Below, one piece after another: positions 10,321 through 55,874 of a stretch of DNA of 64,000 nt. Every line of letters starts with the position of its first letter. Positions within the stretch are counted from its first letter, which is position 1. Made by a program: the position numbers and the translations under genes. The stretch comes from Octopus sinensis (taxonomy: Eukaryota): NCBI RefSeq assembly GCF_006345805.1, contig NC_043004.1, positions 103,292,001-103,356,000 of the forward strand, read 5' to 3'. The notes beneath the pieces were generated by a model. That model ran no database searches, had not been told where the DNA came from, and worked only from the letters and a program-made list of their open reading frames with translations.

Positions 10321-10354
<34 letters not shown>

Positions 10355-10492: not shown

Positions 10493-10574
10493 TATTATAC
10501 ATACTATACACAAACATATATAACTCTACAAGATAAATTATGTTATGTTGTATTTTTTGTGTTTCACATTGAAG

Positions 10575-11197: not shown

Positions 11198-11424
11198 TTA
11201 ATCCAAACAAGTAAGCACAAAAAACACAACAACGCGAGGACGTGGAACAAATAAAGTATTATTGGACGCTCGGGAAAGAAGGAAAGAAGGGGGGTTTAAC
11301 GTTTCGAGCGGAGCTCTTCGTCGGAAACATAGGAGAAGGAAAGATCCAGAGAAGGGAAGACAGAGGAAAAAAATCGCTAACGGTACACACGCGATCACAT
11401 TTTGAATATATATATATATATATG

Positions 11425-12455: not shown

Positions 12456-12681
12456 AAAGAAACTTCGTGTCTTAAAACAAAAACGAAAAGAAAATCATAA
12501 TCGCTAAGCAAATGTTCTTTCTAATTTGCAGATTTGCTGGTAAGATATTAAAAATCAACGGGAAAGAATGCATCAACATGGCGACTTTTAACTTCCTCGG
12601 TTTACTAGGTGACAAATCTGTTGAAGTAAGAGCTTTGAAATATCTACGTTGCGTACATTTATTCATACATACATACATACA

Positions 12682-12713
<32 letters not shown>

Positions 12714-13591: not shown

Positions 13592-13625
<34 letters not shown>

Positions 13626-25200: not shown

Positions 25201-28200
25201 TCTGGTTGAAATACACCGAAAAATGGCGACACAGCAGTCAAAAAATCGTTAAAAATAGGGATTTTCATAGGAAAAATGCACCTTTTTGAAATTGTGTATT
25301 TTATGCAACTCCATAACCTCCCATCTAAGTTTTCAGAAAAACCGAGGAATTTACACAGGTACTCTTAAGTATATTATTATGTGTTCTTCCAACCCCGTCA
25401 CCACCTTCCCTACCACCACCAAGTCTAAGGCGTATTACTATTTTACAACCTTCATTCACAGTGATATGGGGGCGTCTTTCGCAATCACACAAGGATTAAG
25501 AGTGTCGCGCAGCAATTTCCATTTCTTTCGACACAACGACATGGACCATCTTGAAGAATTACTTATCGAACACCAAAAATGGGAAAAACAAGTAAGTCAT
25601 CTTCGTTTTTCTTTTGATAATATTCTCCCGATACAAGGCGGTGAGCTGACAGAAACGTTAGCACGCCGGGCGAAATGCTTAGCGGTGTTTTGTCTGTCTT
25701 TACGTTCTGAGTTCAAATTCCGCCGAGGTCGACTTTGCCTTTCATCCTTTCGGGGTCGATTAAATAAGTACCAGTTACGCACTGGGGTCGATATAATCGA
25801 CTTAATCCGTTTGTCTGTCCTTGTTCGTCCCCTCTGTTTAACCCCTTGTGGGTAGTAAAGAAACAGGTATTTTGTCTGTCTTTAAGTTCACACTTCAAAT
25901 TCCGCCGAGGTCAACTTTGCCTTTCACTCTTTCAGGGTCGATAAATTAAGTACCAGTTGTGTACTGGGGTCGATCTGAGCGACTGGGTCCCTCTCCCAAA
26001 ATTTCGGGCCTTGTGTCTAGAGTAGAAAAGAATATTCTCCCGATAGGGTCGAATGAAATGCTGTAATGATTTTTTAAATATCTTTTACATAGTATTGTGA
26101 CAACAAATATTGTTAGTAGATTGAGAGAATCGTTAGGGCTTCAGACAAAATGCTTTGGAAATATTTAGTATAGTTCTTTTTTCGTGCTAGGTTCAAACCT
26201 TACCATGGTTAACTTTGCTTTTATCCCTTTGTCTGATGCACAGGACGTATTTTATTAGAGGAATAAAAGATACAAAAATCTACTAGACGCAACGTACCAG
26301 AAAAATTATACAAATTGGGAATAAAGTGCCAATATCATTTAACGATTAACATACTTTGTGCAAGTAGAGAAGCTCAAGAAGTTACCCCGTCAACTGCTCG
26401 GGCCTTACTTTTTCCATAGATCTAATGTGATACATATAATGAGATGGCTCTTGAGAGCATATCTCGAAAAAAATATAAGGCCAGACTGTACAAGTGATTT
26501 TACCAGTTTTCAACAAGCAAATAGTCTACATCACATTCAGAAAGATATCATAACACAAATGATGTCGGGCTTGAAGAAGTCTTAACAGATAATGTCGTTG
26601 AGTTAGGGAAGGTTTATCTAACGAAGAGCTGATACTATTAGAACAAAAGTACAAAAAAAATATTGCTAACGAGTCGGCACTTGTGGAGGAAGGTCTGTAA
26701 GTTTTTGTTGATAACCACCCTAATCATGAACGAAACCTAAAAATTACAAGAGGCGTCAACAATGACTTTAGTTCCTATACTGAGCTATATGATGATACGA
26801 CATAAACATCAAGCAATTTTGGATAAGTTCTTCGTCCCTCAAGCAGATGTTGGTTATGGTAAAGCATAAGTCAAAAGATAGTATCCATCATCCATCATCC
26901 TCCCAGCAACTCTCATTCTATCACCACCCCTCAGACAATAGTCAACTTTTTATGGGGTACGATTTTATGGTCCTTATTCATTCCCGAACATATTTCACTT
27001 GAACTATTTTTATGTTTAAAATTATACGGGGTAACTTTAGAAATTGCTTTCTTTATGTAACACATATATATTTCTGGCATTCATACTTGTAATGCAATAA
27101 ATACCATTTATGCCCATTATCACTTTGTTATTAATTAAAATTCTAATCTTATGTTATCTAAATAACTAATCCTCACACAGAACCCGAAGAAGGCTAAATT
27201 GACCAAAAAGTTAATCGTCGTCGAAGCACTGTACCTCAACATTGGAGATATATGTCCTTTACCAAGAATTGTGGAGTTCCGAGACATTTACAAAGTACGT
27301 GTGATGGTTGATGAAAGCTTTAGCCTGGGTATCCTGGGAAAAACAGGCCGTGGCATAACTGAACACTACGGACTTTCAGTAAGTCATAATTCCAATGTTT
27401 TCAACAAACCATCGAACATATATATTGAATAATCCTTTTTATAAATACACATTTAATTTCGCTCTGAAATAATACTGAGGTCATGAACTCGAGTAAGAAA
27501 CGGTTTAACTCACTGAGCAGGTGTTCCAACAATACTGAAGCATAGTGAAACCGGCACAGGTAAAAACAGCGCTCCTTCAGTTCTCAGTTTATAGATGGCT
27601 ATAAGCTCTCTCCATTAATTATTTCAGAGGAGGAATGAAACAAATTTTTTGATTATTTAATGTAGGCGCAGGCATAGCTGTGTGGTTAAGAATCTCGTTT
27701 TGCAACCACAAGGTTTCGGGTTCAGTTCCACTGTGCGGCACCTTGGGCCAGAGTTTTCTACTGCAGCCCTGAGTCCACCAATGCTTTGTGAGTGAATTTA
27801 GTTGATGGAAACTGTATGGAAACTTTTGATATACTTCAATAGGTTGAAACTTACGAAAGCTATTTTAACCAATCAGAATGCAGCTTAGGCGTCAAAGTTT
27901 CATGAACGTCGTTACACAGTTGACACTGAACGTGCTTATTCATAGAAACATTTTAACCAATCACAAACACCGATAGAGGATTCGGCTATAAACAGAATGT
28001 GAGAAATATTTGACACTACGAACCGTAGTCCCACCTTAAATATTTTAAAATTGATTTCATTCAAAAATATTTAAGGCGAGACTATGGTTTGTAGTATCAG
28101 ATGTATCTCAACATCTGATTGCAGCCGAATCCTTTATCGGTGTCACTGATTGGTTAACAAGCTTCTATGAAAAAGCGCAATCAATGTCAACTGTTTCCAC

Positions 28201-30629
28201 TTTCATCAAACCGTGATGCCTAAGTCGCAAGCTGATTGGTTAAGATAGTGTTCGTAAGCTTCAACAGAGAATCCAACATCCTAACCACCAGAACATGCAC
28301 CTTCACATCATCCAATCAAGGAAAGCTTCCTACATCCTTGTCACAAGTTACAGAGGCATACTCTTCCTCCAGTGATTAAACTATATAAAAAATAAGTTAA
28401 TTTTCATCCTTCCAAGATCGATTAAATAATACTCGTTGCATGAGGATCGATGTAATCAACTGCACTTCTGTCCACAATATATAAGACCATGCGCCTATGT
28501 TTGGCAGAACCGTAAGAAAATCGAACAAAACGGTTTGCAGCACTCGTTCCGTTTCTTTACGTTCTGAGTTCAAATACCGCCGAGGTCTACATTGTCTTTC
28601 ATCTTACCGGGCAATAAACTACCAGCCAAGTATTGGGGTTGATTTCATCGACTCAAGTACCCTCAAATTGTTATCCTTGTACGTAATTCAGAAACAATTA
28701 TGGACAACGAGCTGGCAGAGTCGTTAGAACATCAGAAAAATGCTTTCCGGTATTTCTTCCGGCGTTTCACGTTCTGATTTCAAATCCACCAAAGTCAACT
28801 TTGCTTCCATCTCTCTGGGGGTCGATAAAATAATGTATCAATGAATTACTCGAGTCGATGGTACCAACTAAATCCTCCCTTAAAAGTGCTGAGTTTGTGT
28901 CTGGCTCCCTATGTTCCAATCCCGAAAAGTCAACATTTGCTTTTCATCCAATCGAGATCGATGAAATAAAGAACCAATCAAATACTAGAGTCAATGAAAT
29001 CGACAAACTACATTCCTTCAAGACAGCTGGCCTTGAGCTTAAATTAGAAACAATAAATAATTTTTTCTTGTTGCTATGATTATTTATTTAATTATATACT
29101 TTTGTTATTATTATCACTGTAGATAAAAGATATTGATGTGTTCACAGCAGATCTCGAAAATACGTTCGCCAGTGTTGGAGGTCTTTCTGTCGGCAAGAAG
29201 TGGGTTTTGGATAAACAGGTATATGGAAATTTTTCAATATTTTACAATCAAAAGGTGGCGAACTGGCAGAATCGTTAACATGCCGGGCTGAATTTTTAGC
29301 GGCATTTCGTCCGGCTGTATGTTCTGGGTTCAAATTCCGTCGAGGTCGACTTTACCTTTCGTCTTTTCGGGGTCGATAAAATAAGTACCACTTAAACACT
29401 GGGGTCAGTTTAATTGACTTACCCCTACCCCCAAACTTGTTGGCCTTGTGCCAAAATTTGAAATCAATATTCTACATACAAACATGAAAGTATGGCGGTA
29501 TAAGCGACACAGCGCTGCACTAAATGTCTTCTTACTGTCGTCCCTCTCACTTTGGCTATCTACCACTACATTTCATTATAAATCTTTTAAATCTGCAATT
29601 CTTAATTTATTCTTGTGACATTGCCCGCAATATGTTTTTTTTTAGGCCCAGCGTGGCTATATTGGTTAAGTAACCTGCTTTACAACCACATGGTTTCGGG
29701 TTCCCCCTACCCCACCCCGCCTGTACGGCGCTTTGAGTAAATGTCTTCTACTGTAGCCCCAAGCCGACCAATGCGTTGTGAGTTAATTTGGTAGATGGAA
29801 ACTGTGTGGAAGCCTGTCGTGTGTGTGTGTCATTGTGTCTGCGTTTATCTACCATCCATCACTTGACAACCGGTGTTGATTTGTTTACATTCCCGTAACT
29901 TAGCGGTTCGGCAAAAAGAAACGATACACTAAGTATTAAACTTTAAAACAAAAGAAAGAAAAAGAAGTACTGGGATCGTTTGTTGGACTAAAATATTTCA
30001 AGGCCGTGACCCAAATGGCCGCAGTTCAATGACTGACCAACTCTTTAAGGCAGTGAATTAGCAGAGACGTTAGAGTGTCGGATAGAATGCCTCTCCATAT
30101 TTTCCCACGCTCTTTGCGCTTTGAGTTCAAGTTCTACCAAGATCAACTCAATAAAAAACGTACAAATCTAGGGCAATTGATTGACTGGGGCATAAGAATA
30201 TCAGATCAGATGCCTTGCGATATTTGTTCCGCCTCTTTGCGTTCTGAGTTCAAAAAGCAAGTAGTGGAAGCATCGATGACACCATCCCATTTCCATTGCG
30301 CGCACGCACACATACACACAAATATCCACATACCTACCTTTTACATACACACACATGTACTCACACAGAGTTGAATCACTGATTTTTTTTCACCCCTTCC
30401 TTTCTCATTCATATGTTGTAACGGAGAAAAACAAAAGATTCACGACGTGCTCTTTGCCACTTCTCTCTCTCTCTCTCTCTCATTGCTATTACTTTCTCTC
30501 ACCTTCTTTCAGTCAGAGCTATTATTCTCACTACTTCTCCTTCACTGAATTACTATTTTCTCTCCTCTCCCTTCACTTATACTACTCTTTCTCCTACTCC
30601 GTGATTTTGGACAAATATGTGTGTGCGTG

Positions 30630-31118: not shown

Positions 31119-32069
31119 GAAGGTTTGAAAATGTAATGGGCTTTTAGAGATGTTTATTCACTTGACCAGTTTCACTTTTTTATAAAAAGATTGTCAAAAG
31201 TAAAATGTAAGGCTTTGTATAAGCTAATACAAAGCCTTACATTTTACTTTTGACAATCTTTTTCTAAAAAAGTGAAACCGGTCAAGTCAATAAACATCTC
31301 TAAAAGCTCATTGCATTTTCAAACCTTCTTTCATATATATTTTCACTCGTGCGATACCTTACAACATTTACTTTGTTATATATATATAAAAATATATAAA
31401 AACACTACGCTCATTATTATATTAGGGGATGTTACAATTTTATTTTTAAAAAAGCATTATTGCCATCGAGTTTTTTTTATATTTTATCTTATTTTATTTT
31501 ATTCATTTTCCAGAGAATGGGAAGTCTCGGTTATGCTTATTCTGCCTCACAACCTCCGTTGTGTGTTGGGGCCATCATACAAGTGATCAATATTTTAGAG
31601 GGGAGTAACGGTAAGTTGTTTTACAGATATTTGATGAAAAGCGAATGGAGAAGCTCAATCAAAGATCGAAGTCTGCATTTTATTTCATTTTTATATAATT
31701 TAATTAGTGGAGGAAATGCAGTGCCCAGAACCCCTTCAAGGACCGCTAATAACACTGATTGCAAAGCGGAAGTTATCCTCAGACCAGCCAGAATGCTTGC
31801 AACAGTTTGTATTTCGTTAAAGGCACCCAATGGTGGTGTCAATTAAGTGACGGGCTAAGTTTACTGCACATGTACTGAAGCTGTCATTCGGGCAAGTTTC
31901 CCTACAGTTTCCGCCGACTAGATTCCACTCACCAGGCTTTGGTCGACCCCTGGCTGTGGTAGAAGATGCTTGCCCAAGTTACTGCATAGTAAAATTTAAC
32001 CCGAAACTAATGTCAGGAAGTGAACTTCTTAAAAACGATACATGCTTCTCTACCTGTCTGGTACAGCCT

Positions 32070-32125
<56 letters not shown>

Positions 32126-34694
32126 GTGTGTGTGTGTGTGTGTGAGTGTGTGTGTGTGTGTGTTACAAAAAATGTAATGAACTTTGTGACAACTCATTAA
32201 GTTATGTTTGTTACAGTCTTGGCTACCATGTGTATTACATAGATGAATGTTACAATGTATGTTACATGCTAAATTCTTTAATATAATTAAGTTTATGCTG
32301 CATCTGATAATTGCACCTAATGTTATGAGCCGACGAGGAAGCTTCTACTTGATTACACAACTTGCAAGAAGTAGCAGCCAAGTCTCCTTTAAATCACATC
32401 TTACTGTCTTAAGATATTTTTTAAATGACGTGATTGCCATGGCTAGATTGACTTTAATTATAGTTAGGTCGATCAAGGCTAACTTGGAGCTAAAGAACAA
32501 CATCTTATGTTACAATGCATAGAGTGAAGTATCTTATAACCTATTCTGACATAAGTAACCAGTTTATGTGACAAATCGTGTAACACCTATTTTATAGGGA
32601 ATATTGGTTTCAAATTTTGGCACAAGGCCAGCAGGTTTGGGGAGGGGCTAAGTCTATTAAATCAATCCCAGTGTTCAACTGATAATTCTTTTATCGACCC
32701 CAGTGTTCAACTGGTACTTATTTTATCAACCCCGAAAGGATGAAAAGCAAAGTTGACCCCGGCGGAATTTGAACTCTGAACATGAAGACTGGTGAAATAC
32801 CCATTTCTTTATCACCCACAAGGGGCTAAACATAGAAGGGACAAACAAGGAGAGACAAAGGGATTAAGTCGATTACATCGACCCCAGTGCGTAACTGGTA
32901 CTTAATTTATCGACCCCGAAAGGATGAAAGGTAAAGTCGACCTCGGCGGAATTTTAAACTCACAACGTAACGGCAGACGAAATACCGCTAAGCATTTCGC
33001 CCGACGTGCTAACATGAAGACTGGTGAAATGCCGCTAAGTATTTCGTTCGGCGTGCTTACGATTCTGCCAGCTCGCCACCTTGACTTTATAGGTAATATC
33101 AAAATCAATGATAGATACACCCGATGGTACATTCGATATTACACTCCATGATGCGATACAGACCAATAAGCTGGCAGAATTATTAGAGCGTCGGGCAAAA
33201 TACTCAGTGGTTTTCTTCCAGCTCTGAATTCAAATCCTGCTGAGGTGAACTATACATTTCATCATTTCGGGGTCGTTAAAACAGAGTATCAATTAAGTAC
33301 TGGGGTACATTCAATCCACTTATTCAACTCCACAGAATGCCAGGCCTAGGACCGGCAAAATCGTTAAGCGATTCAGACAAAATGCTCAGCGGTATTTTCT
33401 CCGGCATTTTATATTCCAAGCTCGAATTCCGCCGAGGTTGACTTTTCTTTCATTGTTTCCGGAGGTCGATAAAATAAAGTAACAGCCAAGGACTGGGGTT
33501 GATGTAATCGACTATTTCACACTCTTAAAATGCCAAAGCTTAAGACTCATATATCTGCGCATAACTGCTGCCTGACCTACATTCTTTGAGTCACGTCACA
33601 ACGGGATGAGACGGTTTGGCACAGCCGACTAAACCCTCAGCCTGTTTTGACGGCTGTGCTTATTGGCGCTGGAGGCTCGCGCTCAGAAATATACACATAC
33701 AGATAGAAAGAATGAGAGAGCGAGAGAAAGAAGGAAAGAAAGAAAGGCATCACAATTTATTAATTGAACACGATCGACATAAACAGTTCCCCTCTCCTCA
33801 TTAACATCAATGAAAATTCGCTCAGGCATAAACACGGAGAGCGGGTAAGAGGAAAGGAAGGTGGGATGGAACGAGAATCACATTATAGCGTCTGATGACA
33901 AATCAGTTAGCGTCGAGCCCGCAGCGCCAAAAAAGGCGGCGACAAAACGGCTGTGCAGAAATGTCTCACATCACGTTGTAACTTATATCTTATCTCTATA
34001 TTAGAAATCGTCTTACAACTCTTGTTACAGCTCATAATACACTATATGTTACAGCCAACTGTAGCAGGCCATGATTAGATTATGTAACATGACAAAAACT
34101 ATGCTTATATAGCACGTGTTAAAACCTATATGACATCTTAAACTAACGCTACAACATGACCAATGTTCCATCGTATTTAGTCATAAAATTTCCAACGTCA
34201 TAACTCTATTACCATATGTTACAGCATACATCACAGGCTATGTAACTGCTACTTTCTGTTGCAGAATTTGTAACAGAATGTCGCCAAACTTGCGAAATGG
34301 TTCAAGAAAAACTTTCTGAGTAAGTTTTCTTATTTATTACTTAATGAACATCACAACTCATTAGTCATTTCCCATCATCGAGAACATTCACTACATGCTC
34401 GCTTAAAAAAAAAAAAAAGAAAAAGATTGTAGACAGTGAAAATACGTCAAGCATAAGAGTCACAGAGGAGTGGATGGGAACCTACGTGTATCACTTGCTA
34501 GAAATAGCAGCCAAGTTACCTCAAATCACACTTTGCAGCATTATATAGGAAGGATACATAATACAAGAGACTGGATGGTCACAGCTGAGACGCCTTTGAT
34601 AATAAGGTCTGCTCTGACATTGGGTTAAACAACTTCAATAACGATGACGAAGGCAACAATGCTATGCACTATATTACACCATGAACGGTGAATT

Positions 34695-34730
<36 letters not shown>

Positions 34731-35062
34731 ACATGTATACATACATACATGCTTACATACATACATACACACACATACATACATACATACATACACACAT
34801 GCATACATACATACATACATACATACACACACACACATACATACACACACACACACTCACACATGCATACATACATACATGCTTACATACATACAGACAG
34901 ACACACACACACACATACATACATACATACATACATACATACATACATACAGACACACACACACACACACACATACATACACACACATACACACACACAC
35001 ACGCATACATACATACATACATGCTTACATACATACATACACACACATACATACATACACAC

Positions 35063-35097
<35 letters not shown>

Positions 35098-35114
35098 TAC
35101 ATACATACACACAC

Positions 35115-35155
<41 letters not shown>

Positions 35156-35673
35156 CCACACACACACACATGCTCCTTGGGATGTTTTTTTTTTTTTTCC
35201 TTCTCGAGTCACGCCTGGCTCATGAGAGCCGGTTCCCCGATTTCCTTGGCGTATAGGTTCCCCACCTGGACGGGATGCTGATCCATCGCAAAGAGTGAGA
35301 CAAAGTTGTGGCGAAAGAGTCAGTAGAGGTTCGCCATTACCTTCTGCTGGAGCCGCGTAGAGCCTAGGTGTTTCGCTCATAAACACTCACATCGCCCGGT
35401 CTGAGATTCGAACCCGCAATCCTTCGATCGTGAGTCCGCTGCTCTAACCACTAGGCCATGTGCCTCCACGCTCCTTGGGATATTATATGCAAAAGAATAA
35501 CAAAAACGACCCGACAGACGAAACTATAGTCACGTTTAGAATTCGCAATATGTTGTCATCGTTGTCCCCTACGTCTGCAAATGGTCCACTCAATTCACTT
35601 TACGCCAACATTTTTAATTTTATATTAAGGCAGTCTTCAACTGTGTCGGTCTCACCGGGTTATATTATTCATA

Positions 35674-36655: not shown

Positions 36656-39600
36656 TCATGTATGTAAGAATTTTGAAGGGCGAATAAAGTATGCGAGTAT
36701 TTGTGCCTCAGAATGTATGTATATATCTATAATGTATGTTTGTCTATTTTTAGTATTGATGGTTTGAGACTAGGCGGTTTACCATTATCTCCTGTGAAAC
36801 ATCTCTACCTCTCCAAATCTTCAGGTGACAGACAGACAGACTATGATCTTTTACAACGGATTGTCGTATTTGTAAGTATAAAGGTCTCCTTGATTATTTT
36901 TGTTTGCTGTGTGGAAGACAGGAGATGTGATGATCGGCCGCTAAGGCTCCTCTCATCAAAAAAGTCTTCTTTGCGGCCCCTAGGAATCCTTTTAAACTTA
37001 CTGTTTGCCGACTCAGAATCATTCCTAGATTTTTCGGTTTCTATTGTTTCCTTTTACTTGACCACCTCAAACATAAATCTATCACTCCCACCCCCGCTAA
37101 TATTAGTTTCAAATTTTGGCACAAGGCCAACAGGTTCGAGGGAGGGGATAAGTCGATCACATCGAATCCCAGTCCTCAGTTGGTACTTATTCTATCGAGC
37201 CCGAAAGGCAAAGTCGACCTCGGCAGAATTTGAACTCAGAACGTAAAGACGGACGAAATGCCGCTAAGTATTTTGCCCGGCGTTCTAACGATTCAGCCAG
37301 CTTGCCTCTTTCACTACAGTTAATATTAACAAATGATAAACTGACAAACCAAGCCAATGAGTGAGCCTCTACATCAGTGGTTCCCAACCTTTTTTTTTTA
37401 ATCATCTATGGACCCCTTTGATTATTATTTTGCTCTGATGGATTCCCATTGCTGATCGAAGTTTAAAAACTAGTATTATAAATACTTCTTTCGAAATTCC
37501 TGCTTTGTTTTTCACGCATTAACTTGTGAAGGCTGAACTACGTGAAACATTAGAGAAAGAAATCTTGCTGTTTCTTGTAGTAAATACATGTAAATCAGAA
37601 CTTTCTCATGGACCCTTATAATACTATTGTGAATCCCTAATTTACTCTTTTGCATGAATGGACCCCTAAAAATCTTATATAGATCCCCAGGAGTTATATG
37701 GATCCCAACCGGTTAGAAATAACATACACATCTCTATAAGAAAATACACATACATGCGCACACCCTACTGACTTAAAAAGGGAACATATTGAATAATTAG
37801 TCCTTGATACACTATGTATCAAAACAAGATATGGTCATTGGTGGAACGCTTTAAGTTATAGATCTATACTGTTTGAGCTGATATTAGACTAATCAACAGA
37901 AGAATAGACTAACGAACCGATGGCAGAACCACAGCATTATCGCTGAACCTGCTAGAAATAGCTGCAAAAACCCCATCAAAATCTCAACCACTGTCTGTAA
38001 AAAAGGAAGGAAGGACAGATTGGAACAACACAGTTCTGTATACATCATCACTGGTAAGAAGGTGAGATAGCCACGGTTGGTACCCATGTACAGTTGTGAA
38101 TTGTAACATCTAGTGGTACCTAGTTATAACTACGGATTCTGTGACCAACTTACAACTAATCGGCTATAGGCGCAGGAGTGGCTGTGTGGTAAGTAGCTTG
38201 CTAACCAACCACATCGTTCCGGGTTCAATCCCACTGCGTGGCACCTTGGGCAAGTGCCTTCTGCTTTAGCCTCGGGCCAACCAATGCCTTGTGAGTGGAT
38301 TTGGTCGACGGAAACTGAAAGAAGCCCGTCGTATATATGTATATATATATATATGTGTGTGTGTGTGTGCGTGTGTGTTTGTGTGTCTGTGTTTGTCTCC
38401 CTAGCATTGCTTGACAACCGATGCTGGTGTGTTTATGTCCCCGTCACTTAGCGGTTCGGCAAAAGAGACCGATAGAATAAGTACTGGGCTTACAAAGAAT
38501 AAATCCCGGGGTCGATTTACTCGACTAAAGGTGGTGCTCCAGCATGGCTGCAGTCAAATGACTGAAACAAGTAAAAGAGTAAAAAGAGTAAAGAGAGAGT
38601 CAATGAGTGTTAAATTGCCTTAACCACGAACACAATTCAACGCTGGTGACAGGACACGAACCGCCTACCTTTGAGCTGGTTGTTTGATAAGCCAATTGAC
38701 TCAATATCTGCTTCTATGATGAATAATTTACAAGAACAATATTTTACTGAAAAATTGCAAACTTTTATTCACGAATTCTAAGTTTTTTTCCCCTCGTATT
38801 TTTTTTTTTTATTAGAGCCTTACTTTCCTATCTGCAGAATATTTTCATTGACCCATGCAATTCGATATTGGTTCTATTGCTACCCAGTAATTTAGTAGCT
38901 TCTGTTGACCGACACCAAATTTTTAGCGTTATTCTAGATTGGAAGAATCTCACTTCATCTACTTTACCAATATTTTGGTAAAGGCATGATCACCACATTC
39001 GCACTTTACCTTGAGAACAACTTTCAAAGTTAATACAAGTAATTACTGCATGCTGATAAATATCGCGATATAACGAATGATCCTCTACTCGGTTGCTCAA
39101 CATACTAGAAATAACAGCCAAATCATCATCAGTTCACACCCAAACGATTTCAGAAAAGACAGACTGCATAATCTTCGTTGTTCTGGACATACAAAACAGT
39201 GGGATGACCATCGAACATCTTTGATGATTAGTTTGCTCCACAGGGGGATAAACAGCAAGGTGCCACCCGTTATGAATATTAGCAGAAGATCCAGGCTTTC
39301 ATAGATTGAAGAATACGTAACGTAGCAGTGGGCTCCTGTAGAATTAAGTCAGTGAAGCAGTTTCGATTTCCAGGCAAAGCTATTTAACAATTTGTGTGGG
39401 AATTTTTTTCAAAGACGCATGAACGAAATGACCTCTGTTTCTCATCACTCGTTGATGGACACTACTGGCTAAACAGCATCAAAGAGCCAATACCTACATG
39501 ATTACAACAATTCAAAAGGAAGTTTAACTGCGTGGATCTTACCACTCTCGGTTGGTCTGCGACGACAATGAATAAAATCCCTTCTGCCTGAACAATTGAA

Positions 39601-42600
39601 AAAAAAAAGCAGCCTATAAACGATAATTCCTTCACTGTATATGCGTGAATTAAGAACCTTCTTCTGCAACCTCAAATAGATCAGAGCTTTGTGAATGGAA
39701 GACGGACACCGTTCTCTGAACTGTATTATAATACTTAACTTGACTTGACTTCGATGCGATCTCGTTTCAGTCGTCTTTGACTAATGAGTGAATTTTTATT
39801 TTTGTGATGAAAATTCAATAACAGAAATAATAGAAAATTTTAATGTGTCCAATGAGCTGGCGTTAAGATGTGATCAACCAATCAGCGGTCTATGGTTGTC
39901 TATAATAGTTTCTAACAAGCAACTAGATAGTTTTATATATTTTTTCACAAGTGCTGGGCGATTCCAACTCGTGATACAAACACAGACTGCGTTTTAAGTC
40001 AGATCAAACATTTTAATGTCTAACGACGATTTTACCGCTTTGATTGTTGACAATGGATCCGGCATTTCCAAAGCTGGATTTGCAGGAGCTAATTCGCCCT
40101 GTGTTGTATTTCCCTCCATCGTTGGTAGACCAAGACATCAAAGTACCATGGTCGGTATGGCTCACAAAGATTTCTACGTTGGAAACGAAGCCCAGAATAA
40201 AAGAGGCATCCTTTCTTTGAAATACCCCATTGAGCATGGTGTTGTTACCAACTGGGATGATATGGAGAAGATCTGGGAATATACCTTCTACAATGAGCTC
40301 CATGTTTCTCCCGAAGAACAACCTATTCTCCTCACAGAATCTCCTCTTAATCCTAAAGTTAACAGAGAAAAGATGACAGAGATCATATTCGAGACCTTCA
40401 AAGCTTCTGCAATGTATGTTGCAGTTCAATCTGTGTTGTCTCTGTATGCTTCTGGTCGTACCCTGGGTACTGTTATTGACTCCGGCGATGGAGTCACGCA
40501 CACGGTTCCCGTCTATGAAGGTTATGGCCTTCCCCATGCGGTGAACCGTTTGAATTTGGCTGGTCATGATCTTACTGATTACCTCGAGAAGATAATTACT
40601 GAGCGTGGTTACTTATTCACCACATCTGCCGAGAGAGAAATTGTTCGTGATGTCAAGGAGAAATTATGTTATGTTGCAGCTGACTTCGAAGAGGAGCTGG
40701 TTACAGCTGCCACTTCCGCTTCCCATGAAAAGAGCTACGAATTACCTGATGGTCAAATTATCACCATTGGTAATGAAATGTTTAGGTGTCCAGAATCTCT
40801 ATTTCAACCTTCCTTCTTGGGTATGGAATCTGATGGTATCCATAGGATCACATACGATTCCATTATGAAATGCGATGTTGATATCAGGAAAGATTTGTTC
40901 GCCAACATTGTCTTGTCCGGAGGTAGCACTATGTTTCCGGGCATTGCCGAAAGAATGCATAAAGAAATCACTTCCTTTAATCTTGGAACCTCGAAAGTCA
41001 AAATTGATGCTCCCCCAGCACGAAAATATTCCGCCTGGATAGGCGGCTCTATTTTAGCTTCCTTCTCTTCTTTCCAGCAAATGTGGATTGAAAAGGAAGA
41101 ATATATTGATTCCGGACCGTCTATTGTCCACCGCAAATGTTTCTAGGAAGTTTTTCTTTTTAGCCCTTTTGCAACAGCAAAATCGCAGAGTAAAATTTGA
41201 AAAGTATGAATTTCATCGATTGCATGCTTTGTTGCCATAGACTCATTAACAAAGCTCCCTCTTTGTGCTTGTGTTTGTGGAATCATTTTATTTTAGAAAA
41301 AAAAACTGGTTCATAATTTCGGAAAGCAACTCTAAATGTGCAAGAATAAGTTGGTAACATGGAACATATATCCGGTACGAAGGTTGTATGTCTCTTGAAA
41401 ACTAGACTAAGTTGTTAAAGATTTGGAAAAATTATTTTTAAATGACTTAATTTGTACTTTACGAAAAAGGACTATAAACGCACAGCAACCAAGATAATGA
41501 AAAACCACTTTTAACTGAAAAACCAACTGAAACATTGAATTACCTGAACTCCACTATATTGGTGATTTTTAATTTGGTTTAATTGTAAAACAAAGAATTT
41601 GCGCCGTAACGCAAAATTGATTGCAGCGAGGTTTCATGACACCAAGTGAAATGTCACAATTTAATTGTCTTTTTTTTAGTCCGTCTGGCCTTTCAGGTAC
41701 ATTTAGAGTAGCAACTTTTTCAAACATTCCGACTAAGTCTCTGGACGGATAATTCTCCTTTCAAAGTCCAACGAAATTCCAAACGTTTTATAGACAATAT
41801 TGAACGTGCGATGAGTAGGTTTCAATAACTAAAAGAAAAACATTTAATGCGTAGCTTAAGTCAAATATAGACAGTTTCCCCTCCTCAAAATTTTAATGTG
41901 TTTATGCTTTTCAGTTGTACACTTTTGGGTCTGTTATATAAACTTATATAAGGGCAGCAAACTCAAGGATTACCCTTGGAGGTACACATTTAAGCTACGC
42001 CACTGTAAATATGTGTGCGTGGCCTCCTTCAATTCTGAGTCCTGCGGTTTTTCTGAGCTTTGGAATTTCCTTCCAGGGCACTCTTCTGACCAAGGTCTTT
42101 CTGAAAAAAGGCAAGTCGTTGCCCCAGCATGGAAGAGTTCCCTCCTCATTGAACCGACGAAGTGCAATGGAAAAGCAAGGCCGATAAAGAATGACTCTTG
42201 CATCGTCATAAGAGTTGTCTTCAAAACGAAAAGCTACATTATAGCATCCTGTCCAACGTCCTGACAGTGCTTCCAATACATCACCTTGGATAGGTGCATT
42301 TTTATCGATCCCTGAAAGACAAAGTTGGCTTCGGTGAGATTTAAAATCGGAGTTTCAAAAGAAATATCGCAAGGCATTATATCTGATGCTCTGACGAGTC
42401 AACCAGCAGTCGCCCATGCATACCGGCCTCCCCTCTCCACGCCACCAGTGTTATCGAAGGGAAAGGCAAAGGCCGATACAGCTTGACACCTGTGACGTCG
42501 CAACTCATTTCTACAGCTGAGTGAACTGGAGCAACGTGAAATAGAGCTCAAGAACGCAGCCCGGTCCGGATTCGAACTCACAACCTCGCGATCGTAAGCT

Positions 42601-44412: not shown

Positions 44413-47400
44413 ATGTATGTCTGTCTGTGTTTGTCCCCCTAGCATTGCTTGACAACCGATGCTGGTGTGTTTACGTCCCCGTCACTTAGCGGTTCGGCAA
44501 AAGAGACCGATAGAATAAGTACTGGGCTTACAAAGAATAAGTCCCGGGGTCGATTTGCTCGACTAAAGGCGGTGCTCCAGCATGGCCGCAGTCAAATGAC
44601 TGAAACAAGTAAAGAGATCGTCTCAAATAATCGAATGTGTGGAATGTTCAATACACGTTGTAGATTATATGGATTCTCGAGACAATGTTTAACTTGTAAC
44701 TCGAACTTCGCACGTCAATGATCTGAAGTGGTATTGACAACTGAAGATTGCAGTAGCCTGAATTGAAACTCCAGTCACAAAATAAACATTTATTTTCAAT
44801 AACTCCTGTCAACTTACTATGTTCCATTAGTAACCATTCATAACATACTCTAAGAATCTATTTTGTTCTTTTGCAGGCTAAGACCGAAGGTGTAGCACTA
44901 GTCGTCACGGAATATCTGAATGACATGGAATGGTATCTTCCAGATCCAAGGTGAGATGTAGGATCATAGACTTCATTTGAACAATGTATGACTCGTTTGA
45001 ATCCTATTCAAAAAGAAACAAATGTGGAGTATCGTTAAGGACTATGAAATATGAAAAAATAAAAAATAAGTTATATATATATATTTTACTACCCACAAGG
45101 GGCTAAAACAAGGACAGACAAACGGATTAGGTCGATTGCATCGACTCCAGTGCGTAACTGGTACTTAATTTATCGACCCCGAAAGGATGAAAGGCAAAGT
45201 CGACCTCGGCAGGATTTGAACTCAGAACGTAACGGCAGACGAAATACGGCTACGCATTTCGCCCGGCGTGCTAACGTTTCTGCCAGCTCGCTGCCTTAGA
45301 ATGAATAAAAGTTATATATAAGGATCCAGTGGTAAACAAGCTATGAAAAATTGTTATTCGGAACAATTATTCAATTAGTAACGTTGGAACGAGACGAATT
45401 CGGATAAGTTCCTACACCGAGCTGAGACGAAGCTCAAACATTTTTCGTCTCTGGGCGACTTGCAAGCTGTTCTAAGGTACTTTTTTTTATCGACAAAGAC
45501 CGCTATAAGTTTCCTCGAGGACTAGGGTTTATTGTTTACTCTTTTAAAGTATCATCTTTATATATAATTTAAAACTAAAAACTATGAAGGTCTTTGAAAA
45601 TAATTAATTTAGTAAATTAAAAGTAATATGTAGCATATACAGATGGGACGTCAGAGATATATTAATGATTTCGAAGGCGGCGAGCTGGCAGAAACGTTAG
45701 CACACCGGACGAAATGCTTAGCGGTATTGCGTCTGTCGTTTCGTTCTGAGTTCAAATTACGCCGAGGTCGACTTTGCCTTTCATCCTTTCGGGGTCGATA
45801 AATTAAGTTCCAGTTACGCACTGGGGTCGATGTAATCGACTTAATCCGTTTGTCTGTCCTTGTTTGTCCCTTCTGTGTTTGGTCCCTTGTGGGCAATAAA
45901 GAAACATATATTAATGATTTCGAGAATTTCACAGCTATGGCTGTGCGGTGAGAAATTGCTTTGCAACCGCGTTGTTTCGGGTTCAGTTTCATTGTGCTGC
46001 ACCTACAGCTCTTATCTTCTACAGCTCCGGGCCGACCAATTCCTTGTGAGTAAATTTGGTTGAGAGAAACTGTGGAAGCCCGTTCTATTTGTGTTTGTGA
46101 AGGCGTGTGGCTTAATGATTAGGGTCTTCTGCTCAGGATCTTATGGTCGTTAGATGCCCGGCGGCATTTTGTGTCCTTGAGCAAGACACTTTATTTCACA
46201 TTGCCCCAGTCCACTCAGCTGGCAAAACGAGGTAGTACCTGTATTTCACAGTTCCGGCCCTGTCACATTCTGTGCCACGCTGAATCTCCCTGAGTACTGC
46301 ATTAAAGGTACTCGTGTCTGTGGAATGCTCAACCACTTGCACATTAATTTTAAGAGAGAGATTGTCCAAGTGATCGGATCGAATGAAACCCTTGTCGTTG
46401 TAACCGAAGAAGTGCCAGTGTGTGTGTGTGTGTGTGTGTGTGTGTTCGCATAAGCCTTCTCTCCATTTGCTAACCGTGTTACTTTACTATTATCAGTCCA
46501 GTAAAAGAGATCAATTGAATAAGTATCAGGTTTGAAAAATAAGTACCGGGCTCTGTTTGTTCGACTAACCCCTTCAGGGCGGAACCACAATGTAGTTGCA
46601 GTCCAATGACTGAAACGTGTAAAAGATTAATAAAAGAAATTCCTCTTCGTGTTTAGCTTGTCCAAAACACATTATCTTGTTCATACGCTACTTTATCTAC
46701 TTTTAAAAACTCACATTAGTAAATTCCTTTATGACTGACAACGAATAAGAATTAATGAGGTTAAGCAGAATGTTTAAGTATGGGATATTTCGTTTAACTA
46801 AACTAACTTTTATATTGGTTCCATAATTTGTCACACGGCCAACAGTTTGGGGGAAATCTGTAAATTGGTTAGAACTCAATGCTCAACTAATATTTATTTT
46901 ATCGACCCCCGAAAGGATGAAAAGTGAAATCGACCTTGGCGGAATTTGAACCCAGAACGTAAAGACGGACGAATGCCACTAAGCCCGGCCTGCTAACGAT
47001 TAAGCAAGCTCGTCCCCTTAACTAACTTTTCTATTAAAACGAATATTATTTGCAATGATTTACGAGATGCACTCAATGAAGTACACAGACATCAATACAA
47101 GTCATGTTTTCTTTATTTCCTATAAAAAGGATACATAGAGGGGACAAACAAGGACAGACAAGGAACATATAAGGGTCAGACACAGTCTTTACAAAAGATT
47201 AAAAACGCATGGGTTTATGGATATGTCTGACGGATGATATGAAGTAAAAAATATAGATGTTAATTTATCACTGTTTTTTCAGGTTAGTGAACTAACCCGC
47301 CGGTTGATTTCCTTTTTTGGTAATCCTCTCCGTCCCTTTATGCCTGGCCCGACCGTGCAAGTACGACTCCTTGTATTCTCACCTTTCTTACTACTTCCGT

Positions 47401-49128: not shown

Positions 49129-49458
49129 TTTTACAGCATCCATCTTTTTCTTCCATGTCTCTCAATTTTGTTTACCTACGTAATTATCTTCTTTCTCCTT
49201 GTACGTTTTACATCATGAATCAAAATTTTGATCGTAAATCACTGAATACAAAATAAATCGATTCAATGTTTTTAAATCATTATCCAATGTTTACGTCATA
49301 GATAAATGTGTGCGTCATAACTGCTTAAATCAATGTTGTTGTTTTTTTTTCATCTTTACAGTTTACGGATTGCTGTGAACAGAACACATCAGCCAGAAGA
49401 TATCGACAAAGTGGTTAATGTCTTGCGAGCAGCCACCAAGGAGATTCTATCGCTATAA
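10575..49458 (+). CDS. SPTLC1: Serine palmitoyltransferase long chain base subunit 1-like, spliced CDS of 13 exons; first coding exon not securely identified
   Basis: join(10575..10676,11897..12000,12532..12625,19582..19654,22990..23122,25462..25591,27181..27378,29123..29218,31514..31610,34265..34319,36754..36871,44877..44950,49362..49458) = 1371 nt. All introns GT..AG, phases compatible, no internal stop. Motifs: [58 protein letters not shown]. Asn (DLEN) sits at the position of the PLP-binding Lys, and there is no PLP-stacking His (DMGASF), so this is the SPT1-type subunit, not SPT2. Confidence 0.95.
11294..11328 (-). ncRNA. Minimal hammerhead motif (U4>C variant) within a repeat at about 11195..11410
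   Basis: Minus strand: GTTT-CCGACGA-A-GAGC(TCC)GCTC-GAAAC-GTT^-AAAC. Confidence 0.6.
11897..12000 (+). CDS. SPTLC1: SPTLC1-like exon: [35 protein letters not shown]
   Basis: ttctag|GAA ... GG|gtaaat, 104 nt. Matches human [22 protein letters not shown]. Confidence 0.95.
12532..12625 (+). CDS. SPTLC1: SPTLC1-like exon: [31 protein letters not shown]
   Basis: ttgcag|A ... GAA|gtaaga, 94 nt. NGKECINxAxFNFLGL motif. Confidence 0.96.
12775..13259 (-). mobile_element. 5'-truncated RTE-type LINE 3' end inserted in a (CATA)n microsatellite
   Basis: Stop-free C-terminus ...[36 protein letters not shown]...FAGHC...DREVWR...VEQ* followed by a (TGA)4 tail; (CATA)n on both sides. Confidence 0.88.
13260..13700. 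repeat. (CATA)n microsatellite; continues at 12664..12775 on the other side of the RTE fragment
   Basis: Direct reading. Confidence 0.97.
13918..14307 (-). mobile_element. tRNA-derived SINE, family C (head H1 + tail T1)
   Basis: Pol III A/B-box-like head GGAGGCGCAATGGCCCAGTGGTTAGG...GTTTCGATTCCC. 14-bp TSD CTCTAACAGCAGGA (13904-13917, 14308-14321). Confidence 0.92.
14885..15203. repeat. Dispersed repeat ending in a short (CCCTAA)n run; inverted partial copy at about 54640..54795
   Basis: CGGATCTTTTC...TTCGTATACTGGTAGAATGTG...TTCTCTTGGCTTT is shared between the two loci. Confidence 0.65.
15890..16150 (+). mobile_element. Second R4/Dong RT fragment
   Basis: Broken-frame [47 protein letters not shown], homologous to the RT motif at about 1290-1420. 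Confidence 0.7.
17680..18720 (-). mobile_element. Decayed RTE (BovB-like) LINE fragment
   Basis: [24 protein letters not shown] and [28 protein letters not shown], with stops and frameshifts. Confidence 0.8.
19582..19654 (+). CDS. SPTLC1: SPTLC1-like exon: [24 protein letters not shown]
   Basis: tttcag|AAG ... G|gtaagg, 73 nt. [14 protein letters not shown] identical to human, including C133. Confidence 0.97.
20036..20071 (+). ncRNA. Penelope-type minimal type I hammerhead ribozyme motif (A6>U variant) within a dispersed repeat at about 19960..20170
   Basis: CTTT-CTGTCGA-A-GAG(CGTAGA)CTC-GAAAC-GTC^-AAAG: helix I CTTT/AAAG, helix II GAG/CTC, palindromic ACGT helix III. Confidence 0.6.
21812..22050 (+). 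mobile_element. tRNA-derived SINE family B (Meta-domain-like; resembles octopus OR-type SINEs). Other copies: 6512..6749(-), 17145..17370(+), 20793..21188(+, dimer), 25635..26033(+, dimer), 29270..29470(+), 32610..33080(-), 37100..37312(-), 45085..45299(-), 45675..45905(+), 55333..55564(+), 58823..59053(+)
   Basis: AAGGCGGCGAGCTGGCAGAA..GTTAGC...GTTCAAATTCCGCC head plus GCCTTTCATCCTTTCGGGGTCGATAAA.TAAGTACCAG core. The 45675 copy has an 18-bp TSD ATATATTAATGATTTCGA. Confidence 0.92.
22990..23122 (+). CDS. SPTLC1: SPTLC1-like exon: [44 protein letters not shown]
   Basis: caacag|AT ... TG|gtaagt, 133 nt. Confidence 0.95.
25462..25591 (+). CDS. SPTLC1: SPTLC1-like exon: [44 protein letters not shown]
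   Basis: tcacag|T ... CAA|gtaagt, 130 nt. SRS..F.HNDM motif. Confidence 0.96.
27181..27378 (+). CDS. SPTLC1: SPTLC1-like exon (human exons 8+9 as one): [66 protein letters not shown]
   Basis: cacacag|AAC ... TCA|gtaagt, 198 nt. Confidence 0.97.
27843..28265. repeat. About 420-bp imperfect foldback (palindromic MITE-like) in an SPTLC1 intron
   Basis: Arms about 75% complementary by eye; perfect 13-bp inner arms CCTTAAATATTTT/AAAATATTTAAGG. Confidence 0.85.
29123..29218 (+). CDS. SPTLC1: SPTLC1-like exon: [32 protein letters not shown]
   Basis: ctgtag|ATA ... CAG|gtatat, 96 nt. Aligns to human [32 protein letters not shown]. Confidence 0.93.
31112..31335. repeat. 224-bp near-perfect palindrome, TA-flanked (mariner-type palindromic MITE-like)
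   Basis: 109-bp arms with about 5 mismatches and no indels; loop AAGCTA at 31221-31226. Confidence 0.93.
31514..31610 (+). CDS. SPTLC1: SPTLC1-like exon: [32 protein letters not shown]
   Basis: ttccag|AGA ... G|gtaagt, 97 nt. GY..SAS.PPL motif. Confidence 0.95.
34265..34319 (+). CDS. SPTLC1: SPTLC1-like exon: [18 protein letters not shown]
   Basis: ttgcag|AA ... GA|gtaagt, 55 nt. Size and phase (1 to 2) are those required by the neighbouring exons. Confidence 0.88.
34697..35170. repeat. Mixed (CA)n/(CATA)n microsatellite
   Basis: Direct reading. Confidence 0.96.
35186..35469 (-). mobile_element. Chimeric SINE: family C head (H1) + family D V-like tail (T2)
   Basis: Minus strand reads ...CCACAACTTTGTCTCACTCTT (C-like), then TGCGATGGATCAGCATCCCGTCCAGGTGGGGAACC (D-like), then an A-tail. 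Confidence 0.8.
36754..36871 (+). CDS. SPTLC1: SPTLC1-like exon: [40 protein letters not shown]
   Basis: ttttag|T ... TTT|gtaagt, 118 nt. Aligns to human [39 protein letters not shown]. Confidence 0.93.
38168..38592 (+). mobile_element. SINE family A, full length
   Basis: Collinear with the 3305 copy; shorter internal microsatellite. Confidence 0.9.
39849..39907 (+). promoter_or_regulatory. Candidate promoter of the nested actin: two CCAAT boxes and a TATA-like element
   Basis: CCAAT at 39849-39853 and 39878-39882 (AACCAATCAG), TATAATA at 39901-39907, about 110-170 bp upstream of the ATG. Confidence 0.4.
40016..41146 (+). CDS. Divergent actin / actin-like protein, 376 aa, single-exon ORF nested in SPTLC1 intron 36872..44876
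   Basis: Uninterrupted ORF with [32 protein letters not shown] and IVHRKCF*. About 87 differences from beta-actin in 375 positions (manual count). Confidence 0.97.
42398..42632 (-). mobile_element. tRNA-derived SINE: H2-like head with a third tail type (T3)
   Basis: Minus strand: GGTTAGAGCGTCGAGC...GTTCGAATCCGGACCGGG, then TTCACGTTGCTCCAGTTCACTCAGCTG, then an unrelated tail. Confidence 0.75.
43229..43600 (-). mobile_element. Non-autonomous Helitron, same family as 53473..53857
   Basis: Reverse complement matches the 53473 copy end to end; CTAG terminus at 43229-43232. Confidence 0.8.
44877..44950 (+). CDS. SPTLC1: SPTLC1-like exon: [24 protein letters not shown]
   Basis: ttgcag|GCT ... AG|gtgaga, 74 nt. 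Aligns to human [24 protein letters not shown]. Confidence 0.92.
45675..45905 (+). mobile_element. SINE family B with 18-bp TSD
   Basis: ATATATTAATGATTTCGA at 45657-45674 and 45906-45923. Confidence 0.92.
46098..46417 (+). mobile_element. Chimeric, older SINE: family D head (H2) + family C tail (T1)
   Basis: TTGTGTCCTTGAGCAAGACACTTTATTTCAC...CACTCAGCTGGCAAAA joined to ACCTGTATTTCACAG...GTCGTTGTAACCGAAGAAGTGCC. Confidence 0.75.
47978..48823. mobile_element. pogo-like MITE with TA TSD, interrupted by a SINE in its right TIR
   Basis: Left end TA|CCGTAAATCCTCGAGTATAATCCGC. Right end GCGGACTATACTCGAG[SINE]GATTTACG(A)|TA. Confidence 0.8.
48422..48805 (+). mobile_element. SINE family C
   Basis: Near-identical to the 13918 copy. 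TSD ATACTCGAGG (48412-48421, 48806-48815). Confidence 0.92.
49362..49458 (+). CDS. SPTLC1: SPTLC1-like last coding exon: [32 protein letters not shown]
   Basis: ttacag|T ... TAA, 97 nt. Aligns to human [31 protein letters not shown]. Confidence 0.93.
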
Positions 49459-55318: not shown

Positions 55319-55874
55319 ATTTTGTTACTTCCAGGGTGGTGAGCTGGCAGAATCGTTAGCACGCCGGGCGAAATGCGTAGCCGTATTTCGTCTGCCGTTA
55401 CGTTCTGAGTTCAAATCCAGCCGAGGTCGACTTTGCCTTTCATCCTTTCGGGGTCGATAAATTAAGTACTAGTTATGTATTGGGGTCGATATAATCGACT
55501 TAATCAGTTTGTCTGTCTTTGTCCTCTCTGTGTTTAGCCCCTTGTGGGTAGTAAAGAAATAGGTATTTTGTTACTTCCTCTCATCCCCCCCCTCTCTCTC
55601 TCTCTGCAACAACCTGCGTGTTAACATATTTTTATATGAGTTAATAGAGAAGCCTGTACTATGCGGTCCCTCAATCTATTAGAAGTAACAATCAAATCTT
55701 TCTCAAACCACACCCTTCGGTCTTAAAAAATTACCAAGAAGGTTATATGGAAAAATGTAGCTGTATATATACAAGAAGACGATAGTGTCGTGACTGAATG
55801 CCTTTGACCATAGGTCTGTTTGATTAAGGCCAACCTGGATCTGAACTATATGTGTTCGAGGAGAATGAATGCTT

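Follow-up and report, generated by a model that had tools for sequence, protein, structure and literature searches.

Actin is among the most conserved of eukaryotic proteins, and full-length copies that escape this constraint and yet remain functional are informative about what the protein can and cannot afford to lose. A 64,000-nucleotide stretch of the Octopus sinensis genome (hereafter the window; NCBI RefSeq assembly GCF_006345805.1, contig NC_043004.1, positions 103,292,001 to 103,356,000 of the forward strand) contains a candidate for such a copy: an intronless, divergent actin open reading frame (ORF) lying in sense orientation within an intron of a gene of the SPTLC1 family, whose human member is serine palmitoyltransferase 1 (SPT1). 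Is this nested actin a working gene or a decaying copy? We put at roughly three in four the probability that it is a functional, independently transcribed actin paralogue of the octopod lineage, a judgement drawn from comparative sequence analysis.

An intact actin within a single host intron

The locus is defined by the following features, in window coordinates.

36754-36871, + strand: host exon directly upstream of the actin-bearing intron, bounded by AG/GT; corresponds to human SPT1 residues 380-418, with an Argonauta homologue at L003 23211-23327
36872-44876, + strand: host intron of 8005 bp that holds the actin; GT...AG ends, colinear with the Octopus bimaculoides intron
40016-41146, + strand: divergent actin coding sequence (CDS), a single exon of 376 codons plus TAG, supported by its ORF, its match to PF00022 and its orthologues
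44877-44950, + strand: host exon directly downstream of the actin-bearing intron, bounded by AG/GT; corresponds to human SPT1 residues 419-442, with an Argonauta homologue at L003 32338-32409 that is 83% identical
49360-49458, + strand: last host coding exon, with its TAA at 49456-49458, located by tblastn with the SPT1 proteins P0130 and P0122 and by the end of the gene model

As originally predicted, the actin frame runs intact and stop-free from ATG to TAG over 376 codons, at about 103.33 Mb of CM016866.1 (GCA_006345805.1). Its product matches the Pfam Actin family (PF00022) with 442.4 bits, against a cut-off of 27, over residues 4-376, and aligns end-to-end and gap-free to beta-actin (PDB 9uxa_I, E = 1.5e-202). 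The alignment count gives 289/376 identical residues (76.9%) and exactly 87 substitutions, in agreement with the earlier manual estimate of about 77% and about 87. When joined, the two flanking host exons are colinear with human SPT1 residues 380-442 (6m4n_A, E = 2e-6), placing the actin within one 8005-bp intron on the host strand. An antisense ORF of 184 aa (40013-40567, - strand) overlaps the 5' half of the actin CDS, and we find no evidence that it is anything beyond a by-product of sense-strand codon composition.

A single nesting event before the Octopus-Argonauta split

The same layout recurs in two other octopods. The O. bimaculoides orthologue (L001 10001-11131, 88.6% amino-acid identity) lies on the same strand inside a PF00155 gene, in an intron that is colinear with the O. 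sinensis intron throughout. The Argonauta hians orthologue is a single-exon actin of 375 aa (L003 24921-26048, 63.5% amino-acid identity), again on the host strand and between homologues of the same two host exons (L003 23211-23327 and 32338-32409). The intronless, divergent, sense-oriented nesting described for one genome is thus common to all three species, with an intact orthologous frame in the same intron of each.

In a single-sequence search of 5.8 billion proteins, one protein alone, besides the window's own, is nearer to it than conventional actins are: XP_014779484.1, from O. bimaculoides, which RefSeq calls 'actin, adductor muscle' and UniProt 'Actin, cytoplasmic'. The octopod nested actin is therefore already present in both databases under an ordinary actin name, and our literature searches found no paper describing it. 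With a profile built from both Octopus proteins, conventional actins reach 718-722 bits but the Argonauta orthologue only 580 bits; ranking by sequence thus fails at this distance, and the Argonauta copy was reached via host synteny. At 63.5% identity, the Octopus and Argonauta actins are less alike than either Octopus protein is to conventional actin, the mark of lineages that have each diverged rapidly, and separately, from an ancestor resembling conventional actin.

Fourteen derived residues are common to all three actins, and 7 more are common to Argonauta and one Octopus species. These shared states, together with the same intron and strand, show at the level of sequence comparison that the nesting arose once, before the Octopus-Argonauta split, for which fossils give a minimum of ~29 Ma (A. 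hians chromosome-level assembly paper). Synonymous sites are near saturation over this interval (dS ~1.1). About 14-21 replacements fall before the split and about 75-125 after it, so that, on constant-rate reasoning, the insertion took place not long before the split; it is predicted to occur in all incirrate octopods and to be absent from squids, cuttlefish and Nautilus. The locus is also a clean, dated case of a gene nested in sense orientation, an arrangement that has lasted for at least ~29 million years.

Selection maintains the reading frame

The evidence for function comes from the pattern of change within the frame. Between the two Octopus species the flanks carry 23 indel events in 2239 bp, and the 1131-bp CDS carries none against 11.6 expected (P = 9e-6). 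Between Octopus and Argonauta the only change in CDS length is one in-frame codon deletion, as opposed to ~180 indels expected from flank rates, and no frameshift is found across the three lineages. The replacements themselves are conservative: the 50 shared-derived (stem) replacements have a mean BLOSUM62 score of +0.54 versus -0.36 under random mutation (p = 5e-5), and the 43 recent-branch replacements are also more conservative than random mutation (p = 0.017). Between O. sinensis and Argonauta, dN is 0.255 and dS 1.106, giving a dN/dS ratio (omega) of 0.23 (bootstrap 0.16-0.31); at this distance the neutral value near 1 is not seen.

The absence of CDS indels, the conservative replacements and, above all, the Argonauta omega exclude a neutral retrocopy, and the sequences of the three species show an open reading frame kept since before the Octopus-Argonauta split. 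The original prediction had argued for purifying selection from the number of substitutions accumulated without a stop. Its conclusion stands on the grounds given here, but the argument does not, since the Octopus-pair substitution pattern is close to neutral (see below).

A spared ATP-binding core and remodelled surfaces

We next consider what kind of actin this frame would encode, using the functional residue classes described for actin rather than a computed structure. Both Octopus proteins align ungapped over 376/376 positions of actin, and the Argonauta protein has a single codon deleted. The listed nucleotide- and cation-binding residues are unchanged at 23/24 positions in O. sinensis, 22/24 in O. 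bimaculoides and 21/24 in Argonauta, the changes being M16I/T, S303T/N and K336N. Set against 92, 85 and 142 of 376 positions changed overall, these 1, 2 and 3 changes of 24 correspond to Fisher p values of 0.013, 0.13 and 0.008, respectively. Core sites of O. sinensis and Argonauta have thus changed significantly less than the rest, suggesting that the ATP-binding core has been spared. Change at the surfaces is distributed as follows.

DNase I-binding loop (D-loop): 5-8/15 residues changed (Octopus 5/15, Argonauta 8/15)
Hydrophobic plug: 3-7/13 residues changed
Barbed-end cleft: 2-8/14 residues changed (Octopus 2/14, Argonauta 8/14)
N-terminal acidic patch and myosin weak-binding residues: 3-4/8 changed
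Myosin/tropomyosin face: 4-7/11 residues changed

Taken together, the partner and filament surfaces of the Argonauta protein are changed at 34/61 positions versus 108/315 elsewhere (p = 0.002), and only in this species is the enrichment significant. The Argonauta plug carries Phe266->Lys, Gly268->Asn and Met269->Ile, its C-terminal Phe375 is Leu, and His73 (the methylated histidine of conventional actin, in the YPIEHG context), present in both Octopus species, is replaced by Asn. The Octopus N-terminus is partly neutralised, reading Met-Cys-Asn-Asp-Asp in O. bimaculoides, near the molluscan MCDDD type, and 4/24 of the listed lateral and longitudinal contacts are changed in Octopus. From these residues the Octopus proteins look capable of entering filaments, and the Argonauta protein may not be.

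We propose that the protein keeps the actin fold and a near-intact ATP/cation core while most of the constraint on conventional actin has been lifted, with fast evolution at the D-loop, hydrophobic plug, barbed-end cleft, N-terminal acidic patch and myosin/tropomyosin face. Its role would most likely be a specialised one, confined to certain tissues, with an altered set of partners binding its filaments or the co-polymers that it forms with ordinary actin. A role in the male germline is suggested only by analogy with the fast-evolving actin relatives discussed at the end.

The same surfaces bear on a different possibility, namely that the product resembles actin-related proteins (Arps) and does not polymerise. 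It would work as a monomer or within a larger complex, perhaps in the nucleus or in a sperm-head cytoskeleton, as has been suggested for mammalian testis actin-like proteins. The Argonauta protein would fit such a role in lacking His73 and Phe375 and in its changed plug, cleft and D-loop, as would, to a lesser degree, the Octopus proteins with their altered D-loop and partly neutralised N-terminus. However, the plug, cleft and lateral/longitudinal contacts of the Octopus proteins are largely intact, none of the insertions typical of Arps is present, and the identity of the Octopus proteins to actin is still 77%. We therefore regard a non-polymerising product as possible but unlikely.

Putative promoter and transcript ends

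Independent transcription would require signals around the actin CDS. The original prediction had noted candidate CCAAT and TATA elements, and these are present, with CCAAT at 39849 and 39878 and TATA-like sequences at 39900-39907 and 39934. The candidate elements are listed below.

39849-39853, + strand: second, distal CCAAT, identical in O. bimaculoides and unaligned in Argonauta
39875-39942, + strand: putative core promoter, consisting of CCAATCAG at 39878-39885, TATA-like CTATAATA at 39900-39907, then TTTCTAAC...AACTAGATAG; aligns with Argonauta
39930-40015, + strand: predicted 5' untranslated region (UTR), placed from the TATA position
41147-41280, + strand: predicted short 3' UTR and polyadenylation region, with AGTAAA at 41189-41194 and U/GU-rich tracts at 41223-41237 and 41260-41280

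The block at 39875-39942 is the sole part of the flanks that still aligns with Argonauta. Its consensus is CCAATCAG, followed ~20 bp on by CTATA(T)A and then by TTTCT[AG]AC...AACT[AT]GATA. The local alignment score of 18 compares with a shuffle mean of 11.5 +/- 1.65 and is matched by 6/500 shuffles for O. sinensis and 1/500 for O. bimaculoides. Neutral DNA has lost its alignability at this distance, and neither the 3' flank nor a distal intron control outscores its shuffles against Argonauta. This block is the best evidence that the actin has a promoter of its own, and transcription would plausibly start from it, near 39930, giving a 5' UTR of ~85 nt. Read by eye, the predicted 5' UTR contains no upstream ATG, and because TAA stands in frame at 39995, the protein can be neither extended at its N-terminus nor fused to host exons. 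No CArG box is found within 1 kb upstream of the actin. The two Octopus species differ by a 31-bp indel in the predicted 5' UTR, at window position 39991, and by an 8-bp indel right at the TATA-like element (39905-39906), indicating that spacing at these points is not strictly constrained within Octopus.

Downstream of the stop codon the + strand is free of AATAAA and ATTAAA as far as 44781, extending the earlier observation of their absence, and AGTAAA occurs at 41189. This hexamer, at +43, is kept in O. bimaculoides (+42) and not in Argonauta, and probably serves as the poly(A) signal in Octopus; the unspliced mRNA would then end at a non-canonical AGUAAA ~45 nt past the stop and measure ~1.3 kb. 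The tract that follows AGTAAA in O. bimaculoides (L001 ~11244-11296, compared with window 41260-41280) is a (GT)n microsatellite of ~50 bp; should this GT-rich tract act as the poly(A) site's downstream element, the two Octopus species have elements of markedly different length.

The stretch from 40196, inside the CDS, to 44781 is the window's longest + strand gap without AATAAA or ATTAAA. In O. sinensis the region free of canonical hexamers extends 3634 bp past the stop; in O. bimaculoides it spans 1410 bp and in Argonauta 892 bp, against a background of 1.45-2.64 hexamers per kb; the joint probability, computed post hoc with Octopus and Argonauta as two lineages, is near 0.01. These stretches in all three species are only suggestive of the idea, raised in the original prediction, that weak poly(A) signals spare the host transcript.

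Could the actin instead lack a promoter and be made only in host transcripts, by way of an alternative terminal exon or intron retention? The sense orientation and the AG-terminated pyrimidine tracts upstream, such as ttttttcacaag ending at 39951, would allow it, and the Argonauta host model ends exactly at the exon before the actin. The TAA at 39995, on the other hand, bars a fusion protein and would leave the actin as a poorly translated downstream ORF, the CCAAT/TATA block is the one flank sequence kept to Argonauta, and the truncated Argonauta model is more simply explained as an annotation break caused by the nested gene. Production from host transcripts alone is therefore quite improbable.

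Origin of the actin copy

We propose that an intron-free actin copy entered the intron of the host in sense orientation before the Octopus-Argonauta split, most likely by retroposition from the mRNA of a conventional molluscan actin of the 'MCDDD...' type. The actin ORF is uninterrupted by introns in all three species. A conventional gastropod actin gene (Babylonia, L010) carries a 9-kb intron at codon 41/42 that the nested actin lacks, consistent with retroposition, which we favour, with some reserve, as the likeliest route.

Points against function and the remaining alternatives

Several observations weigh against a functional, independently transcribed gene. Between O. sinensis and O. bimaculoides the CDS (93.9% identity) shows no conservation beyond that of the 5' flank (93.7%) or the 3' flank (92.0%). 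The 46 nonsynonymous and 23 synonymous changes in this pair give an omega of 0.55 by the Nei-Gojobori method (NG86; bootstrap 0.33-0.96) and of ~0.74 when kappa is taken into account (p = 0.15), a ratio not significantly under the neutral one, and Octopus may be losing constraint on this actin. The promoter block is, within Octopus, no more conserved than other flank runs: a 55-bp perfect run over the CCAAT boxes ranks only seventh-longest and alone is no evidence, and conservation of the distal CCAAT is not above background. As to the retrocopy origin, its usual traces are absent or equivocal. No direct repeat brackets the actin gene as a target-site duplication would, although its loss by erosion is expected at this age and its absence is compatible with retroposition. 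The A9 run at 41297-41305, 151 nt past the stop, survives in part in O. bimaculoides but is not matched in Argonauta. The residue-class comparisons depend on general lists of functional actin residues and not on a computed structure.

Expression evidence that can be linked to the locus was likewise not found, and our literature searches turned up nothing specific to this gene. The protein clusters hold no Octopus transcript-derived members, so that absence from them is uninformative. In an O. sinensis gonad RNA-seq study that used the same assembly, an actin-domain gene, EVM0021683, is differential between ovary and testis and carries the Gene Ontology term 'sex differentiation' (PMC11202624). 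This gene could not be mapped to the nested-actin locus, and the sign of its change is inconsistent with the text of that paper (PMC11202624).

The Octopus-pair figures are what a neutrally decaying processed pseudogene, not yet struck by a stop or frameshift, would predict: substitutions are as frequent in the CDS as in the intron around it, and 69 neutral substitutions would leave no stop with a probability of 0.12, making the intact frame alone a weak argument. Such a pseudogene is nevertheless highly improbable and effectively refuted by a frame intact in three lineages at dS ~1.1 with omega 0.23, by the indel counts (0 versus 11.6 expected within Octopus, and 1, in frame, versus ~180 to Argonauta), and by conservative replacements that spare the ATP-binding core. 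Constraint is weak for an actin all the same, with omega ranging from 0.23 to 0.55-0.74. A rise in omega on the recent Octopus branches (p = 7e-4 on multiple-hit-corrected counts, p = 0.14 uncorrected) is suggestive of either relaxation or positive selection.

At the opposite extreme, an ordinary conventional isoform, cytoplasmic or muscle, would agree with the database names and with the full-length, colinear protein. Our reference was a set of seven conventional actins of mammalian, molluscan, flatworm and environmental origin, which are 91.8-95% identical among themselves, from flatworms to mammals; identity to this set falls to 75-77% for the Octopus proteins and to 62% for the Argonauta protein, and 73/91 derived Octopus states fall at sites invariant in all seven. 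With omega at 0.23-0.55, very high for an actin, these measurements refute the conventional isoform, to which we assign hardly any probability: judged by sequence, the nested actin has neither the ~90% identity nor the extreme purifying selection of a conventional actin. Misassembly, for which we found no supporting point, is refuted by the agreement of three species' independent assemblies with colinear flanks, so that the placement of the actin is genuine.

The host is a divergent SPTLC1 paralogue

The nesting was originally placed in SPTLC1 itself. The family, the flanking exons and the shared strand were correctly assigned, but the host is a divergent paralogue and not the canonical gene. 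Host exons were first located by tblastn with a human SPTLC1 probe, and the conclusions rest on window-derived peptides and database proteins. The limits of the upstream exons are those of tblastn high-scoring segment pairs with SPT1 proteins, taken in + strand order with splice boundaries not refined.

11897-12001, 12536-12649, 19573-19665, 22974-23120, 25430-25591, + strand: upstream host exons, approximate, part 1
27178-27381, 29123-29233, 31511-31612, 34264-34317, + strand: upstream host exons, approximate, part 2

The host belongs to PF00155, and its best solved-structure match is serine palmitoyltransferase 1. The annotated SPTLC1 of O. sinensis (XP_029639928.1 and isoforms) lies on the same chromosome at 87.84-87.90 Mb, ~15.4 Mb away, and the window exons are only 40-63% identical to this canonical protein (P0130) by tblastn. 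Overall, the host is 54% identical to canonical O. sinensis SPT1 and 52% to a mammalian SPT1, to which the canonical copy is 57% identical. In a neighbour-joining tree the cephalopod SPT1 sequences form one clade (96% bootstrap) that splits in two, a canonical-type group (92%) of P0130 and two transcript-derived proteins, and a divergent group (100%) of the window host, Argonauta P0121 and two other transcript-derived proteins. The closest relative of the window host is a partial Argonauta hians protein. One transcript-derived member of the divergent group, P0122, is spliced in at least 11 RNA-seq runs. These comparisons identify the host as a cephalopod-specific divergent SPTLC1 paralogue and point to a second SPTLC1 gene in cephalopods. 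Relatives of both copies are present in transcript assemblies.

Host and canonical SPTLC1 have the same exon boundaries, and their duplication was therefore DNA-based. No actin-like sequence is present in the homologous intron of canonical SPTLC1 (L015 53771-57647), and the insertion is thus specific to the paralogue. Any link of the actin to canonical sphingolipid synthesis, or to the yeast LCB1-actin connection raised in the original prediction, is even more remote than had been supposed.

The Argonauta host model GAB1600150.1, labelled 'partial' (L003 10001-23330), stops directly after the exon that precedes the actin, its reading continuing for a single intron codon (...RIVLFV), and the last two host exons are still present downstream (L003 32338-32409 and 32962-33051); the annotation was probably broken by the nested gene. 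The 475-aa host product is listed in the gene-position index, yet it is not among the homology-search matches to a query made from its exons.

It is conceivable, though we consider it a long shot, that the nested actin co-evolves with its host and is regulated together with it, both being lineage-specific, fast-evolving duplicates of strongly conserved housekeeping genes that serve one specialised cell type, such as spermatids, with actin transcription or 3'-end formation controlling the host product. If so, the actin unit would decide between full-length host product and one without the last two exons, and selection against strong hexamers would explain the AWTAAA-free stretch in the three species.

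Other features of the window

Scans of the window for Rfam families and transfer RNA genes gave no hits. Two adjacent ORFs at 7532-8822 (- strand), with the frame broken between them, the second of which (8181-8822) matches DDE_1 (PF03184, 3e-27), are read as the remnant of a pogo/Tigger-type DNA transposon, lying upstream of the first mapped host exon at 11897. Long microsatellite arrays (4256-4717, 10089-10649, 12512-13829 and 34681-35386) produce spurious reading frames on either strand, several of them overlapping in different frames and 150-320 aa long ('YIHTYIHT', 'CMYVCMYV'). The ORF at 12785-13744 (- strand) has a non-repetitive C-terminal part with no Pfam hit. Interspersed repeats of ~150 bp that resemble short interspersed nuclear elements occur in several host introns (32865-33013 and 45128-45291; 45689-45847 and 55348-55503), and in cross-species BLAST they match the same O. 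bimaculoides segments, L001 6410-6573 and 17763-17919.

Comparison with known systems

The nested actins share with conventional actin (beta-actin and molluscan P0107) their length, PF00022, the phosphate-binding loops DNGSG and DSGDG, Gln137, His161, Lys213/Glu214 and the C-terminal HRKCF, and differ from it in the replacement of 23-38% of residues, mostly at sites that are invariant there. They show the ATP-binding core to be the indispensable part of actin, and the D-loop, plug, cleft and myosin/tropomyosin faces to be open to remodelling. The three proteins, at 77%, 77% and 62% identity and the last without His73, form a natural series for the biochemistry of filaments and partner specificity.

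Mammalian beta-actin-like protein 2 (ACTBL2, kappa-actin) is encoded by a single-exon gene regarded as a retrogene. Its product, like the octopod actin, has 376 aa and is colinear with cytoplasmic actin, and its representatives P0112 and P0118 share 75-76% of their residues with the octopus protein. It has diverged much less, however (P0118 versus the beta-actin type, 346/375 = 92%, compared with 77%/62% for octopods); ACTBL2 arose independently in vertebrates and is not orthologous to the octopod actin.

The mammalian testis genes ACTL7A/ACTL7B and ACTRT1-3 are intronless or lineage-restricted, fast-evolving, germline-biased actin-fold genes. Drosophila Arp53D is likewise described as fast-evolving and germline-biased (PMC8291977). 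All of these are much more diverged than the octopod actin and carry extensions or insertions, of which the octopod protein has none, bar the one codon deleted in Argonauta. The class of Arps and actin-like proteins as a whole combines low identity with such insertions or extensions; the octopod actin is free of them and, at 77%, stands apart in identity as well, the 62% of Argonauta being borderline.

The nearest parallel comes from the Drosophila obscura group, in which D-ActL1-3 and Arp2D are lineage-specific actin/Arp duplicates, fast-evolving and clade-retained (Schroeder et al. 2020, PMC7038667). The fly paralogues are 96.8%, 66.8% and 57.1% identical to Act5C, and Arp2D arose by retroduplication (PMC7038667). 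The octopod actin, at 77% and 62%, falls within this range of identity. Male-germline expression and positive selection have been demonstrated for the obscura-group genes, whereas the octopod gene is known here from its sequence. At ~14 My, the fly genes already include some pseudogenes; the octopod gene has an age of at least ~29 My and has kept its frame in each of the three species, and it alone of these is nested in sense orientation within an intron. On these comparisons, the octopod gene belongs, as an independent case, with the actin paralogues that are confined to one lineage and evolve fast.

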